From positions 1,116,001 to 1,180,000 of the forward strand of contig CAJFCJ010000011.1 of the NCBI GenBank assembly GCA_904063045.1: DNA of 64,000 nt, read 5' to 3'. The notes under the pieces were generated by a model. The model did not search any database, was not told the DNA's origin, and saw only the letters and a program-made list of their open reading frames with translations. Numbering within the stretch: position 1 is the first letter of the stretch; each line of letters begins with the position of its first letter. This DNA is from Dimorphilus gyrociliatus (lineage: Eukaryota > Animalia > Annelida). Positions 48,978 through 58,603 of the stretch are shown here, in pieces. A program made the translations under genes and the position numbers.

Positions 48978-51900
48978 ATGATCAGCCTCCTCTTCATCGT
49001 TCTCCTTCTTCATCAGAGTTTGGCTAAGACTGAAAAAGGTAGGAGAATTAATAATATTCTCTCATTATTTCAAAAAGTGAATAATTTTTTAAATATTTAC
49101 CAATAGTATGTATACTAAAAACGCAGGAACAAACTATAATCATTCTATCATCATAGAATACAGCTGTTCTTGTAAAAATAGATAAACTTTAATAGTTTAT
49201 AATTAGGACTATGATACCAATTAGAGTAATAAAAGCAATTATAAATTATATTCATAAGTTAAAATACTAAAGGAAATGTTTACTTAAAAGAAAATTGTTA
49301 GAATAGTAAATGACATTTTCGGGAAATTTCACCAATGAGCTATATCAGAGATTGCGTCAAATCAGGCATGTCTACCCTCTAAGGGACAGCCTGGTGTTTA
49401 CAACATAATTTATGTAAGATATCATATATATATATAGTTTCACTTAACATTTTATATATCTTTTGTTAAAAATCCTTTTCTCTGGTCAATATTACATAGT
49501 TCCACTTATTCTCTTTCCCCCTCTCTCTTTCTCTCTCTATCTCTCCTACTCGCAACAATTAACTTCAAAGAGAGAAATTCACATGATAAAAGTGTATAGT
49601 ACATAGAATGATTGTATTTTGATGAAATAGTAATCTAATACGACTATATGATCGAATGCTTAGATCAAAGTTTGAAGGAGAAGGGTTAAAGTTTACTTTC
49701 TTTCATATTAAAAACTTTTAAAATTGGAGCGTTAAGGAAAAGATAAAGAGTAAGGAGACTTTTTAAAATTTTAACGACTACTAATCAAAAAAGAAATAGA
49801 AAGCTGTTTCTAGCAAATTTTTAGAATCTTTCTGTGTCGTGGCTGTAATATGATTTTTGAGAAGTTATTATATATGTTAGAACAAAAGTGCTAGAGATTG
49901 ATTTATCTTCGCATAGGAAAACTTGTCGAGATAAAGGTTTCTTTCACGAAGAGAATTACATCCTAAATCCTGCCTTTCTATCCCCTCCTTTTTATTTACA
50001 GTGTAAGACCAATCGATAAGCAACATTTGCGCCTGTCTAATTCGGCAGCGTCCCTTTTCACCCGTCCGCCTTCTCTTCTCTTTTTATATAGTATTGGTCG
50101 ATAAATTTCCTAGGCGAATGACCCTTTCGGCGAAGATAAATCGACTGCAATATAGGACAGCAAGCGGAACGATTGATCCTACTTAAACGTGCCTTTATCT
50201 TTCTTTTTGTTTAGTGTCTAAACTCCCTCCCCCCACTTCTAAAAACTCATCTTGTACTACCTTATCTTTCCCATCTCGATTATGTGATTTTCACTCTTTC
50301 TATTTCTCTTTAACGACATATAAGAACCTCCGGCACCCACAAAGAACCATACAACTACAAACGTCCGGTGCCGTTGTTGGATTATCACCGAAAACTACGC
50401 TTATAAATGAAGCTATTGAAAAAGAAATTCAATGTCTATAAATCATTTATTGAGGCGTACGAACGATTAGTAATTTAGTTCCTTAAAACGTGAATAATAA
50501 ATTAGGCGATCTCAAATCTTTCCCGTCCCTTTCTCTCCCTCCCTCCCCCTCCCTTCTCTCTCTCTCTCTCTCTTCCTGTACCCCCTTATTCAAAGCACAT
50601 TAATTTTTACATATATTTGCGCAAATTCATTGAACAGGTGTATTTATTGCAATTAACTATTCATATTTAACAAAGAATATAAAGCCTACACATTTATATA
50701 AAATCATTGAAATATTGAAATAGATACTGCATTGTATTCCAATAAAAAAAATATATGAAGTAAAAGGAAGAATGACGCCAGTGAAAAAAAATAGATAGAC
50801 AAATTAGCTAGAATTATCCAAAGAGAGGATTAGCAAATGTATTGCCTAGAAAGTAACGGAAATGAATATGAGAATACACGACGAAGAAAAAACAGTTCAG
50901 TAGAGTAGATAATATTAGTGGATTGTTGAGAAGTGACGCGACAAACTGTAAATCCCCTAAGGGATGGAAAGCATATTTGGAAAAATGCGCAACCGCAAAT
51001 TACTAGTCGTAAAAAATAAATTTTTGCTTTTTCTACCTCTATATTTACTATATTCCTTCGATTTTCCCCACTTTATGCTCATTTCTGAAGTTTGATATGA
51101 TAGAAAGGGGAAAATATGGGAAAAGGCAGAGAAAAAATCTACAAAGATATATGGAAAGAAATGATAAGTTAAAGAGGGAGAACTTTTTTCTTATGTTATT
51201 TTTTTTCTAAAAATAAGAAAGCGCAAAGAGGTAGGAAGATAACTAGAAACAGGCGTTAATCAGAGGCAACAAGTTCATCTTGTAACACAAAAAAAACGTC
51301 TGTAGGCAATTAGAGTTAGGCGTCTACTAAAACGGATTCGTTTCAATTGAATGCAAATGAAGTGAGAGGTTTTTCTTTCTGTATGAGCGACCCAAGAGAA
51401 ATTCTTGTTAGAAACGTTTTCTCCGTTGATCTACTTCTCTTTAAAACTCAATATGGCTCGGGATAATCTTATTGCTCTGTAGCATTTAAGTTTCCATTTT
51501 AAAATGTAATATTCTTCTAGTTTCAAAGAGGAATTCCATTCTCTTCTCAGCCCTTTATAAGTAGATAATTATCGAACACAAAGGCCAATTCGTTATCGGA
51601 AAAATGTTTGATCTATAAGCAGTAAATACAAGCATTTATTTTTAAATATCGCTCAAAAGAAACATTATAAAAGAATTTAACTGTATCAATAATAAATAAA
51701 TTTTCATATATAAGAAATGCTTGTATTGGTGACATTAATAATAATAAAGTATAATTTCAAGCATAGATGAAACCGTTTATCTAAGTTTGTTTAGGCCTAT
51801 TTACAGCCTATTACGAAGAGAATGTTTTAGAATCCATACTTCAGATCGAAAAACGCCGTGAAAATTGCTTTGGCAAACACAACTCGACCTTTACGAAAGT

Positions 51901-54900
51901 TTACAAAAGCGTTCCGTTCTCCGGCGCTTCTGTCGAGCGTAAATTGCATAAACAATGTATATCTTTGAGGATTTTTCACGTATTTTCAAATAAAAGGCCA
52001 CTATATAAAATGTAAAGGAAAAAGGGATAGAGTAGAGTTAAAGGAACTCTGTTTCTATATCCGCCCACACCCATCACCACTCTTCCTCCCGAATCATCGC
52101 CTCCAATCTATTTCCTCAATTTATAAATTAGACGACCAAATTTCTTCCATCAAGGTGACGCAATCGGATTTAATGGAGTTCAGGCGTCTAGTTTTTATAC
52201 TGTTTTTTTTCTTATTCTTCTTTTTTCCAGTCTTGTCAATATTCTATATTTTATAATTTTCTTCGAAAACAGATTACGCAATCAAAGCCAGATTACCGTC
52301 TGACGAAGAGGAATTGATGGAAATGTTGTTGGACGGCTATAATCCCTCTGCTCGTCCTGTATTGAATTCATCTCACACTGTTACGGTTCAAGTTCGATTC
52401 TCACTGCTTCAAATTCAGGACTTAAATTTACGTAATCAAGTGTTAACGACAACGGGTCTTTTAATCTTAGATTGGGTAGATGAGCGTCTTCGTTGGGATG
52501 AGGATCAAATTGCTTTAAAGGACATTGTAATAGAAGCGAGGAAGTTATGGCGTCCCGAGTTCGCTTCAATAAACGGAGCTGACGGAATCTACGGTGATTA
52601 CGGTCAATTTCGTGCACTTGTCAAATCAAATGGCTCAGTCCATTGGGAACCTGGAGGTGTTTTCAAGACAGTTTGTGAGATTGATATAACTTATTATCCA
52701 TTCGATGAACAAAACTGTGAGCTAAAATTTGGAGCTTGGTCCTATCATACGACAAAAATGAACTTAACTAGCACTGGTGATGAAGTAAATAAGGATTCTT
52801 ATGAACAGAACGGAGAATGGGAGATTTCGTCTACGAGTAAGTCTTGATTTGTTCTCCTCTTAATATTAATGCTGTGCGGCTAAAGATAGTCTGCGATAGA
52901 TAGATAGATAGATAGATAGATATATTATATTTAGAGCAAACAAGGAAAAGACATAGGCTAATATTACATTATTTGTGAGTCTGCCTTTCTGGCTGACCCT
53001 TACATACAACACTTCTGTACAGAGGATAGGGGAATCTATTGATCATGGTCAGTGAATGTAATAGAACCTTTGTGCTTGTTTGCCACCTAAAAACAAATTA
53101 TTTTGTAATCACTAATATTTTCTCAGTCACTCTAAGTGACACATGATTTTCTTTTACTATTATTCCTTTGTCCCTGAATTTAATTTCAAATGCTAAGCAT
53201 TACCAACTAGAGTAAGCTCTTAAACAAATATAGCTTCCTCCTCCTTAATTAAGCACTATCAATTTAATTAATCAGCCCGTTACTTGAATCTTCTTAAAAC
53301 ATATTACGATGAGTTAAAAAAAATTATTTCTCTTTATAAAGTCTTTCTTCTCTTCTTTCTCTTCTTAATTTGCTTTAATTACTTTCCTACCTATATTCTG
53401 AGCTGGATGACTTTTTGATTAACGGATTTGCCATTTCTAAAAACCTTCTGCAAAGAATTTCTCTTTCAATAATTTCCAAGCCTCTCTTGCTTGTTCGCTT
53501 TCTCACCCACACTCGCTCAATTTACAAATCTTTTTTCTCTCCCTGCTTCTTTCTTCAACGCTATCTTTCTTTTTTTTTCTAATGTTTTTACTATTCCTCT
53601 TACCTTTACACCTCTTAGCCCTTTTCGATAATTGATGAAATCCACAAAAAGCTATTAATTTTGGTTATAGATTGATGAAGATTTGGGTTAATAGAGTTTT
53701 ATCCCAGGCTAAGAAACCCATCATCTATTCCCAATATAATTTTTTTTTAAAAGCATTTACTCCGAATAAACAAGAAAGGGTGATATCAAACGTATAGACA
53801 ATTTAACAACAGAGAAGTAACTATTGTTTATATTCCTTTCGAATCCACTTAAAAAGTAATTTTTATTCATTTGTCCCTTTTTTTATGCTAAAAAAAAGAT
53901 TCTTATAAAAGCGATAATGATTCGGATAGGAGCTATTTTCTTTTTACTGAAATCAGCTCTTTTATTCATTTAAGGGACAGCGAAACTAATAAATAATAGA
54001 TTGGTAACTTTTGCAAAGGCAACAAACCATAAAAGACTAGGAGACAAACATTTCCACATACTTCATTTTCAAGTTTCTTTCAATTATTTTCCTTTCTGGT
54101 GTGGTTCATCAAGACCATACTAATTTTCATATATATGGAAATGAATGAGTGTAAGCCTAAGAATCGCGTGTTCTCGCTTTATAAAGAGTGATAATCGATA
54201 TATATATATTATCAGTTTATAAATAAAAGAGATATTTTCTTGCTTTGATATCTTGTTCTCCTTAGACAAACTGTAAATTCATCTTCATAAAGGGATCGTC
54301 AACTGTCAATTTACTTTTGTTTTTACACTATAACCTCGTGTTTGTAGATTAAAGTTCTTTTTTCTTAAAAAGTATAAGATATCCTAAAAGACAAACAAAT
54401 TCTCGATGACGTAGTTTTTTCAATGCACTTTATATGTTTAATTTTAATTAAGTAATTAAGTGTATCGGAAAGTTTTGATGTAGACACGTGTTTTTACATA
54501 TTACAGGAAAGACTTACAGCTTAGGAACATTATCACTTTTAGTATACTTATATTGCAGCCAAATACATGTATATACTATATATATATGTAAATGCTGCAT
54601 ATTTTATTGTAATACATGTTTTAGTAATTTTTTCTTTTAATCTTTATCCCCACTGTTTCTGGCTGCCTGAATTACTTACTCCTACAGTCAACCCGACGTA
54701 AGACGTAAGTCTTTTTCTCGCGTAGGCCTAATAATTTATTGCTCTCAGCTTTGACGTAATTGCTGTAGCTCTGTCAATAGTTTTGTCAGTATTCTTTATA
54801 TTGGTTTTTGCGAACTTATCTACTGCTAATTTTTAGATATAAAGACTTTTATTTCAGTTTAAAGATGAGAGGTACCAAAACTCTTTCATTATTTGCTCAT

Positions 54901-56831
54901 ACTACAGTTTATCACTTTTTTTGTTCCATTTCCCTTAGACTTTATCCCTTTCGTCATAGCTTAACCAATCTAATCTTTATCTTTCTTTTATTGTTCCTAT
55001 TCTATTTGTCATTCTTCTTCGATTCAAGTAATTTTTTCCTTCTTAATCTGGATCAAAAAAAAAGAAAAACACTAAGATTCGCCCTTTACTTAGACCGTAC
55101 TATTCTTTCTTCGCATAGATTTTTTTTCTTTGCAGTAATACAAAAAAAAACTCATTTACAATTATATCCCCCCCCCCTTTTCGGCAAGCAAGTATCTGGA
55201 TATAATAGGCCTAGCTTGAAAGCAAAGAAATTATTGAAAGGTTTAGCGTTACAGTGTCAAAATGTTCGTAGGTAATGAAATTTTAAAAACTCATCAGATC
55301 GAACTGGTTATTTTAGAAGACAAGAATAAGAAAAGACAGGTGGCGCTGTTGAGATTTTACTTTTTTTTTAGTGTAAAATATTTATTTTTTACGTTCCTCT
55401 CTTCCCGGTTTGACTGGCGGTGAGAGGCTAAAGGGGGCGAAGGGGCACGTTCGATGTGCAGCTTAGTTCTCCCTCTATTTTCTCCCTCTTTCCAATCCAA
55501 GTCAAATTCTCAATGGGGGCGGCTATGGACTGCTGAATCTTCGATGGGTAGGATACGCCAGACTAATTAATCGATTACGTTTATTTAACTTGACTATAAA
55601 CTTTATAACTATTAGGGCATTACTAAACACTTCTTTAACGAGGTTAATTAGGTGAAAGATAAATAGGGAAAGTATCGTGTTAATGCCTCTGTAAAATAGT
55701 TGACGAAGAGAAAAAAAAGAGGGAAAATAGTGCAAGGAAATGAACATGTGCAGAAATAAAAGTGATGGTTTTTTTATTTAGAAAAAAAGATATACAGACT
55801 TTAGTATATATAAGAGTTATATTTGTGTAGGTAACATTCTCAAGAATAGGTAAGAGTAGTCGAATAGGAAGAGATAGTGTAGAAGAATAAAGAGAGGGAA
55901 AGAGTAAGAGAAAGCATTTACAAGTGACTGAGAGAGCAGAGGAGATTGAGGGAAGGGAAAAAAACACAGTTGATTGATTTTTTTATCTGTCTTCCTTTCC
56001 TTGTTCTTCAAATGTCTAAAGCTGAATGTTTTCTTTTTTTTTGAAAAAACAGAGGCTAGCAGAGGAGAGTTTTACTTCGCTTGTTGTGAGAACGAACGTT
56101 TTAGCAATGTGAACTTTGAACTTCGTCTCAGAAGACGCTATACATTCTACGTCATGAACGTTATTTTGCCGTCTATGATGACATCCGTTCTTCTATTGAG
56201 TATCTTCTTTTGTACGCCAGCTCAAAAGGTTCAAATAGGCGTCGTCGTCCTCCTCTCATTCCGCATCTTTCTTCTAAACGTTACAGATTCAATTCCGAAG
56301 ACTAGCGATCACATTCCGCTACTAGGAATTTATTTAACGTTAACTATGGCCATAACAACGTTATCTATGGTGCTTACTGTCTTTATACTCAACCTGCACC
56401 ACATTACAGACCGTCCTGTACCTACCTGGGCAAAAATCCTTGTCCTCAAATACTTGGCGCGGCTTATGTGCATGTGTTCTTATGAGATATACGCAAAACT
56501 CGATCAGGATCCTCAAATTAGAGACGGGCACAGGATTAGCGAATCTGCCTCATTAGGCAAGGCTATAGGAAAACAATTGAATTTATTGACAAAATTGAAT
56601 GGTTCCTTATCGGGGTCAAAGAACGCCAGAATGAGTAGACGTTTCCTATTACCCGGTAAGAAAACGCAGGAGGATAAAAAGAAAGAGGAAGAATGGACAA
56701 GAGATTGGCGGTTGTTAGCCGAGGTCGTCGATAGACTTTTCTTTTGGATTTTTTTATCGGCCATTGTTATAACCACTCTTTTATTGTTTCATCCATTGAC
56801 AAAGGGTTATTTTTCCATTTATTCTCGTTAG
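48978..56831 (+). CDS. Nicotinic acetylcholine receptor alpha-like (Cys-loop) subunit, atypical, about 467 aa, 3 exons
   Basis: Exons 48978-49038 (signal peptide MISLLFIVLLLHQSLA), 52273-52836, 56053-56831 (phase 1,1; 1404 nt). GYNPSARPV, Cys-loop CEIDITYYPFDEQNC, loop B FGAWSY, vicinal CC in loop C (YFACC, 56082-56087), four TM helices, MA/M4 DWRLLAEVVDRLFFWIF. Confidence 0.92.
52895..52922. repeat. (GATA)n microsatellite
   Basis: 7 GATA units in nAChR intron 2. Confidence 0.9.
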
Positions 56832-57981: not shown

Positions 57982-58603
57982 TTATTTGAATCTGAAAATC
58001 AGAGAAATTAGTAAGGGTACGAGCAGCCATATCGACCAATTGACGACTGGTGCAGTATTACAAAGTGGTTGAATACATTCGCAGTTAATCAATTTAGCAC
58101 CACCACTTGCTTTATAATATTCACAATAAGACCTGAGCTGTCGAACATCAGCACAGCCTCGTGTTACATGTGTATCTGGATTGAAACAAAAGTATCTTAT
58201 AATAATCAAAATATTACTCTTTAAGTGATTTTAAGTAGTAGTAGACTTACAATTTGAATTCTGAAGCTGAGATTTGGTACAGGCATATTTTGCTACACAT
58301 TTGTACGCGTCGTCTGTATTTGATGGAGGTTTGCCTTCTAAACACCAAGAGTCTGTTGTTGAGTTACATTTGAAACAGCTCATCTCTGTTAGGAAAAAAT
58401 ATATATGTAATACATTAAGCGTTATTTTATTTAATACATATACTTTAATATACATGTATCTATATATATATATATATATATATCTCTTTTATTCGTTTTT
58501 TTAAATACTTGTATACTGTATATAAAAGGGCTTATTTGTTTCTCTTACCGGAACTGGCCAAGGCCACTAGAGTGGAAAGAGTGAAGAGGATAACAGCTTT
58601 CAT
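57982..58603 (-). CDS. GPI-anchored Ly6/uPAR three-finger protein (quiver/sleepless-like), about 127 aa
   Basis: Exons 58603-58549, 58385-58251, 58175-57982 (phase 1,1). Signal peptide MKAVILFTLSTLVALASS, 10 cysteines starting CFKC and ending CEC...LCN, hydrophobic GPI-type tail (WSIWLLVPLLISLIFRFK). Confidence 0.85.

Follow-up and report, generated by a model that had tools for sequence, protein, structure and literature searches.

The window analyzed here comprises 64,000 nucleotides from the annelid Dimorphilus gyrociliatus (contig CAJFCJ010000011.1 of assembly GCA_904063045.1, positions 1,116,001 to 1,180,000), with positions counted from its first letter. Positions 56053–56831 on the forward strand form the final exon of DgyrCDS8593, a three-exon gene encoding a protein of 467 residues. 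The public model of this gene is CAD5120010.1 (P0298), retrieved through the 90% cluster to which the exon open reading frame (ORF) belongs, and all full-length analyses of the gene used that record. Three public proteins of the species also match at 99–100% to other loci of the genome. DgyrCDS8593 is a pentameric ligand-gated ion channel (Cys-loop receptor), and its pore, which carries an arginine at position 12′ of the M2 helix, is by sequence comparison a clade-defining architecture under selection.

The DgyrCDS8593 gene and its product

Exon 1 (48978–49038, forward strand, as for all features of the gene) supplies the start codon and signal peptide in 20 codons plus 1 base, matches the N-terminus of P0298 exactly, and ends at a GT donor at 49039. 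Exon 2 (52273–52836) encodes the ligand-binding domain with its Cys-loop, is followed by the donor GTAAGT at 52837, and is identical to P0298 residues 21–209. Exon 3 (56053–56831) encodes loop C, helices M1–M4, the intracellular loop and the stop, and is identical to P0298 residues 209–467; Lys209 is encoded by a codon split across the exon 2/exon 3 junction (A/AG). The frame of this last exon (56052+3n) is open from the acceptor cag (56050–56052) through the stop codon at 56829–56831. All three exons thus have open frames with GT/AG borders and agree with the independent public model. An ATG at 52173 was considered as the start of exon 1 and rejected, as both the public model and the sequence place that exon upstream at the coordinates given above.

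The protein possesses each of the features expected of a Cys-loop receptor: a ligand-binding domain, a four-helix membrane domain and the Cys-loop itself. Pfam searches with the exon ORFs matched PF02931 (3e-46, exon 2) and PF02932 (1e-25, exon 3), and the same domains were recovered from P0298 (7.8e-53 and 5.9e-25, respectively). The Cys-loop cysteines, Cys155 and Cys169 (codons 52674–52676 and 52716–52718), are separated by 13 residues. The vicinal cysteines of loop C, Cys219-Cys220 (56082–56087), align with the Cys-Cys pair of the α3, α4 and α6 subunits, a signature that by sequence makes DgyrCDS8593 an α-type subunit. An AlphaFold2 model of P0298, built on a 30-sequence alignment, has a predicted local distance difference test (pLDDT) score of 82 and helical M1–M4; its secondary structure places M1 at residues 238–261 (56139–56210, pLDDT about 90), M3 at residues 298–325 (56319–56402) and the MA-M4 helix, which aligns with the M4 region of α3, α4 and α6, at residues 411–453 (56658–56786). 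The top Foldseek matches of this model are nicotinic receptor chains, with template modeling scores of 0.68–0.74 (query) and 0.76–0.87 (target) at a probability of 1.00.

A word search of sequencing runs matched five runs, one of them RNA-labelled with 13% of the sampled words. Logan contigs of D. gyrociliatus (P0299–P0301, compared with window positions 52317–52844) revealed amino-acid polymorphisms in exon 2, namely Gln to Leu and Ile to Val near Asp-Glu-Asp, and His to Arg ahead of Trp-Glu-Pro; these contigs represent unspliced exon ORFs and are therefore silent on transcription.

Pore architecture and its conservation

In the textbook account, the charge selectivity of pentameric channels is set in the first turn of M2, by a Glu ring at −1′ in one class and by Pro-Ala-Arg in the other. 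The M2 helix of DgyrCDS8593 runs from Lys 0′ to Asp 20′ (56226–56288), with Gln at 2′, Val at 6′, Leu at 9′, Arg at 12′, Ile at 13′ and Asn at 17′, and is preceded by a short M1–M2 turn and cytoplasmic mouth that reads Cys-Thr-Pro(−3′)-Ala(−2′)-Gln(−1′) (56211–56225) and is gapped relative to α3, α4 and α6. The diagnostic codons are CAA for Gln −1′ (56223–56225), AAG for Lys 0′ (56226–56228), CAA for Gln 2′ (56232–56234), CGC for Arg 12′, which is Arg279 in the translation (56262–56264), and GAT for Asp 20′ (56286–56288). HMMER alignments to the solved human α3, α4 and α6 subunits open a 2-residue gap in the worm subunit between M1 and M2, and in all three it matches Lys 0′ but has Gln opposite the −1′ Glu, and Gln and Arg opposite the Thr residues of 2′ and 12′, respectively. 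A preliminary description of this locus, made from the sequence alone, had assigned the same residues and the same Arg codon and had called the linker shorter than that of α7, and both statements were borne out by the translation and alignments. From the conserved M1 Pro to 0′ there are 19 residues in DgyrCDS8593, compared to 21 in the other nicotinic-type genes of the same genome and 22 in its anion-channel genes of the Pro-Ala-Arg (PAR) type, and the AlphaFold2 model leaves two non-helical residues between M1 (238–261) and M2 (264–286). As this span is shorter than in both the Glu-type and PAR-type genes, the inner mouth appears to be built unlike either known class. A cation-selective nicotinic pore combines a −1′ Glu or Asp ring with a linker of standard length, whereas DgyrCDS8593 has Gln and a linker two residues short; comparison with the same-genome PAR-type genes likewise revealed no Pro(−2′)-Ala(−1′)-Arg(0′) signature.

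The same pore recurs in a family of related proteins, which we term the Arg-12′ clade and delimit by a short linker (M1 Pro + 19), Gln or His at −1′, Arg at 12′, Asn at about 17′, and monophyly; DgyrCDS8593 has all of these. The linker and M2 were already nearly invariant in a first alignment of 21 sequences. For the counts that follow, all fetched proteins with the short linker (104) were reduced to 74 distinct M1–M2 segments. Position −1′ is Gln in 71 of the 74 and Glu or Asp in none, 2′ is Gln in 57 and His in 15, 6′ is Val in 60 and Ala in 14, and 9′ is Leu throughout (74/74). Position 12′ is Arg in 70 segments, the others having Lys (1), Met (2) or Pro (1), and 17′ is Asn in 69. Two positions vary more freely: −2′ (Ala in 30, Gly in 24, Ser in 13) and 20′, which is Asp in 49 and Gly or Ala in other members. 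Among 90 other nicotinic-type proteins recovered, −1′ is Glu in 85 and 12′ is Ser, Thr or Ala, with Arg or Lys in none, indicating that the pore features of DgyrCDS8593 lie beyond chance. The early remark that an Arg in mid-M2 is unusual for a nicotinic receptor therefore holds, and the suggestion of an atypical channel pore is strengthened, in that conservation of the 12′ Arg in relatives, proposed there as a check, marks the pore as the hallmark of a whole clade. Over M1–M3, DgyrCDS8593 is 77–86% identical to the full-length named annelid members.

Together, these residues define a lumen-facing stripe of Gln(−1′), Gln/His(2′), Val/Ala(6′), Leu(9′), Ile/Leu(13′) and Leu(16′), which by sequence is a long hydrophobic run with no acidic ring beneath it and with Arg 12′ and Asn 17′ as its sole polar additions. 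The subclade with His at 2′ comprises DgyrCDS5352 (C6:4525965-4526714), P0008–P0012 and P0122–P0124; P0167 also has His at −1′. The 2′ His would place titratable side chains around the narrow end of the pore and may make it sensitive to pH or Zn2+.

A protein search of the 78-Mb D. gyrociliatus genome found six Arg-12′ members including DgyrCDS8593. Their 12′ Arg codons are CGC in DgyrCDS8593 and at C2:917k, CGA at C2:4392k (DgyrCDS1923) and C6:3717k, AGA at C27:379k (DgyrCDS13725), and CGT at C6:4525k (DgyrCDS5352). The use of four synonymous codons among six paralogues, with many silent differences around them, points to purifying selection on the residue and away from a copying artefact. 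Of five paralogues checked for the vicinal cysteines, three have them and two lack them. The other nicotinic-type genes inspected in this genome have the longer linker and Glu in every case (13/13). A genome-wide search with a degenerate nucleotide pattern of the M2 motif performed no better than its control (40/39 matches versus 29/23).

Introns absent from DgyrCDS8593 occur in the paralogues at C2:4392k (L005), C27:379k (L007), C6:3717k (L014) and C2:917k (L004), one lying in or just after the Gln-Lys codons of the linker and one after the Leu-Leu-Gly of the M2–M3 loop; many database fragments without a species name also terminate at this Leu-Leu-Gly. That a single exon of DgyrCDS8593 spans loop C to M4 suggests intron loss. 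Downstream of the gene and tail-to-tail with it lies a small Cys-rich ORF (58231–58455, reverse strand), which had zero Pfam matches at E values up to 0.1.

Distribution, phylogeny and the ligand-binding site

Orthonectids are today regarded as derived annelids. The named members of the clade are all either annelid (Capitella, Helobdella, Ridgeia, Lamellibrachia, Paralvinella and Dimorphilus) or from the orthonectid Intoshia, as established by sequence word searches, including one restricted to M1–M3, and by cluster look-ups. The best matches from mollusc, flatworm, rotifer and Owenia have ordinary Glu pores, and the clade is apparently restricted to annelids. When 1.84 billion representatives were scanned exhaustively with HMMER, the best 150 comprised only Arg-12′ members or Glu-type subunits, and none of these 150 was of the Pro-Ala type. 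A search of the ESM Atlas gave generic nicotinic clusters only.

In a maximum-likelihood tree of 55 sequences, which left out the Lymnaea and Schistosoma chloride-channel sequences, the Arg-12′ family forms one clade with a support of 100 in the Shimodaira–Hasegawa-like approximate likelihood ratio test (SH-aLRT) and a stem length of 1.13; without the columns of the linker and M2, support is 99. The closest relative of DgyrCDS8593 is a Paralvinella gene present in the models LSH36_78g04014 and 04013 (76% and 61% identity). These two models of Paralvinella palmiformis (P0143 and P0002), covering the binding domain and the membrane domain, adjoin on the same contig and are probably a single gene divided by annotation. 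The nearest outside group consists of P0131, P0187 and P0179, with a support of only 85. P0131 and P0187 have a canonical Glu-type linker and M2, while P0179 (483 residues) reads Ser-Thr-Ser-Gly-Lys, with Gly at −1′, in a linker of full length and lacks Arg 12′; it may be an intermediate, or it may have lost the Glu ring independently.

The ligand-binding site was compared by HMMER alignments to α3, α4 and α6 and to the solved β3 and α2 domains. DgyrCDS8593 (exon 2 and 56082–56110) keeps the loop B Trp but has Ile for Tyr in loop A, Leu for Trp in loop D, and Phe, still an aromatic residue, for both Tyr residues of loop C, so that the complete aromatic box of a nicotinic α-type subunit is lacking. 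The states of loops A, B and D are identical across the clade. In the alignment of binding domains, P0131, the only outside-group member included, shares the WEPGG and FGAW motifs and the loss of the loop A Tyr with the clade. The combination in P0131 of a clade-like binding domain with a Glu pore implies that the pore was remodelled once the binding domain had already diverged, and with these substitutions in the binding site the agonist may be other than acetylcholine.

Proposed permeation through the Arg-12′ pore

The pore was remodelled on the stem of the clade: the M1–M2 turn lost two residues, Gln replaced Glu at −1′ and Ser/Thr at 2′ (where one subclade has His), Val or Ala replaced Ser/Thr at 6′, Arg took the place of Ser/Thr at 12′, and Asn that of Leu at 17′; the residues concerned have been almost invariant across the clade ever since. 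The occurrence of members with and without the vicinal cysteines in one genome suggests that family members co-assemble, and a pentamer of the family would then present five arginines about halfway down M2 and a cytoplasmic mouth without an acidic ring. Between 6′ and 16′ such a pore is otherwise hydrophobic, and its positive potential would exclude Na+, K+ and Ca2+ and favor Cl−, giving an inhibitory (anion-permeable) ligand-gated channel reached by a route other than the Pro-Ala one taken by the glycine and GABA-A receptors and by the nicotinic chloride channels of molluscs and schistosomes. An anion-permeable or cation-excluding channel is the likeliest reading of the Arg-12′ subunits, although we would give it slightly less than an even chance. 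It is rated first on the strength of the human muscle receptor, in which two Arg residues at 9′ (α1 L251R) are enough to leave about 3% of the cation current and to produce a Cl− conductance at positive potentials with the −1′ Glu ring intact (PMC6800317); five Arg residues without a −1′ Glu should match or exceed this effect. The engineered cation-to-anion conversions cited in the same study all include removal of the −1′ charge (PMC6800317).

A number of points weigh against anion permeation. Position 12′ is not among the classical lumen-facing positions and is not known to have been labelled in cysteine-accessibility studies. Helical arithmetic (100° per residue) puts it about 75° off the stripe formed by 2′, 6′, 9′, 13′ and 16′, an offset that should be small enough for a side chain of 6–7 Å to reach either the lumen or the neighboring M2; Arg 12′ could accordingly sit at the M2–M2 interface, perhaps paired with the clade-specific Asn 17′ of its neighbor. 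DgyrCDS8593 also retains Asp 20′, an outer ring of the cation type (Gly or Ala in some members), and the Pro-Ala pair at −2′/−1′ that defines the anion motif is absent. Loss of the −1′ Glu is by itself a weak sign of anion selectivity, given that the muscle γ subunit, part of a cation channel, has Gln at this position. The conversion by L9′R, for its part, was partial and voltage-dependent (PMC6800317). If the orphan receptor Alpo1, considered below, belongs to the clade, the family may resist gating or be non-conducting. Finally, the function of every clade member, DgyrCDS8593 included, is read from sequence.

An interfacial Arg 12′ would also suit a channel that still conducts cations, in which the residue is structural, for example through a hydrogen bond to the neighbor's Asn 17′ or Ser 10′, and tunes gating or stability but not selectivity. 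Cations would be drawn by the 20′ Asp ring and the vestibules, and the neutral −1′ ring would probably confer low conductance and low Ca2+ permeability. We regard this as rather unlikely, although it accounts for the position of 12′ off the pore-lining stripe, for the presence of Asp 20′ in 49 of the 74 segments, and for an Asn 17′ that arose with Arg 12′ and is as conserved (69/74); furthermore, α7 stays cationic when its Glu ring alone is neutralized (PMC6800317). Five uncompensated charges within about 10 Å of the axis in a low dielectric would, however, raise the barrier to cations, and the family alignment contains no conserved buried acidic partner in M1–M3. The loss of the 2′ and 6′ hydroxyls, with His at 2′ in one subclade, is also atypical for a cation path. 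Alternatively, the subunits may be modulatory or non-conducting, either co-assembling with Glu-type subunits or forming silent pentamers, and acting as brakes by lowering conductance, adding rectification or trapping receptors, in the way that the muscle receptor is silenced by one or two α1 subunits bearing the Arg. A single α1 L251R subunit leaves negligible Na+ conductance (PMC6800317), two of the five aromatic box residues are lost from the binding site, and Alpo1, a possible member only, was unresponsive to 33 compounds, all consistent with such a role. We nonetheless consider it unlikely: the retention of several subtypes across annelids, with and without the vicinal cysteines in one genome, resembles a self-sufficient receptor family, and the M1–M3 identity of 77–86% to named annelid members speaks for a working pore.

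The small share of sampled words in RNA-labelled runs would fit an error of assembly or annotation, or a pseudogene in decay, but three open exons with consensus splice sites match an independent public model, about 100 proteins from many assemblies carry these residues, as do independent contigs of D. gyrociliatus, and variation around the Arg codon is exclusively synonymous among the paralogues. An artefact of this kind is thus very improbable, and the concern voiced in the preliminary description, that the Arg or Gln codons might be assembly errors or the gene a pseudogene, can be set aside on grounds of conservation.

Returning to permeation by anions, selectivity of this kind in the Arg-12′ clade is plausible. 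The broader proposal, that a mid-M2 Arg ring and a truncated M1–M2 turn provide anion-selective or other non-classical permeation in a ligand-gated annelid family new to the literature searched, is one that we put forward tentatively. If true, the Cys-loop superfamily would have solved charge selectivity a third time, independently, and annelids would have an unrecognized fast transmitter system that is inhibitory or unusual in some other way. The six paralogues of the 78-Mb genome offer ready constructs for electrophysiology and cryo-electron microscopy.

Comparison with known channels

The Arg-12′ pore type was absent from the literature searched, including a survey of the lophotrochozoan expansion of nicotinic receptors (PMC6896357). 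With the nicotinic α3, α4, α6 and α7 subunits (6pv7, 6ur8, 8zrn and 7koo), DgyrCDS8593 shares the fold, both Pfam domains, the 13-residue Cys-loop and the vicinal cysteines of loop C, as well as Lys 0′, Leu 9′, Ser 10′ and the outer-ring acid at 20′. It differs from them in a linker shorter by two residues, in Gln −1′, Gln 2′, Val 6′, Arg 12′ and Asn 17′, and in the Ile, Leu and Phe of loops A, D and C, respectively. The glycine, GABA-A and glutamate-gated chloride channels (GlyR, GABA-A and GluCl) have in common with it a basic residue at 0′ and possibly anion permeation as an outcome, but form a separate branch of the superfamily, with Pro(−2′)-Ala(−1′)-Arg(0′), Thr at 12′/13′ and no mid-pore charge.

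The classical cation-to-anion switch lengthens the M1–M2 linker by one proline. Closer in ancestry are the anion-selective LnAChR subunits of Lymnaea and SmACC-1/2 of Schistosoma, which are defined by Pro-Ala in place of the −1′ Glu (PMC4055736). Like DgyrCDS8593, these chloride channels are lophotrochozoan nicotinic-family subunits without a −1′ Glu, some of them α-type with YxCC (PMC4055736). DgyrCDS8593, in contrast, has its Pro-Ala at −3′/−2′, followed by Gln-Lys, in a linker that is shortened, not lengthened, and a mid-M2 Arg such as it carries is not mentioned for the Lymnaea and SmACC channels (PMC4055736). The preliminary description had drawn an analogy to the molluscan channels; taken as membership in the Pro-Ala group it fails, as the motif is Pro-Ala-Gln-Lys with a variable −2′ and the nearest relatives are Glu-type, a separation made here by the described motif. 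Any likeness to the molluscan anion channels may be functional at most.

Among annelid receptors, a parallel is Alpo1 (Alv-a9), an orphan of Alvinella pompejana that is the only one of Alpo1–4 without a negative charge at −1′ and that oligomerizes alone (PMC4801368); neither agonist nor current was found for it among 33 compounds (PMC4801368). Alpo1 and DgyrCDS8593 are both annelid proteins grouped with nicotinic subunits and lacking the −1′ negative charge. Alpo1 may belong to the Arg-12′ clade, a lead by description only, and purified protein and nanobodies would in that case already be to hand. Alpo4 (8bx5) was considered as a clade member and rejected, as it scores below vertebrate subunits.

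A precedent for the charge itself is CHRNA1 L251R, the 9′ Leu-to-Arg change of congenital myasthenia, which likewise places an Arg in mid-M2 and in experiments suppresses Na+ current and admits Cl− (PMC6800317). L251R is a pathogenic change at 9′, present in two copies per pentamer with the Glu ring intact, whereas the Arg of the Arg-12′ clade is natural, conserved and at 12′, is presumably contributed by all five subunits, and accompanies a retained 9′ Leu and the absence of a Glu ring. A natural family of this kind would show whether parts of the pore other than the first turn of M2 can determine charge selectivity, as the human L9′R mutant hints that they can.

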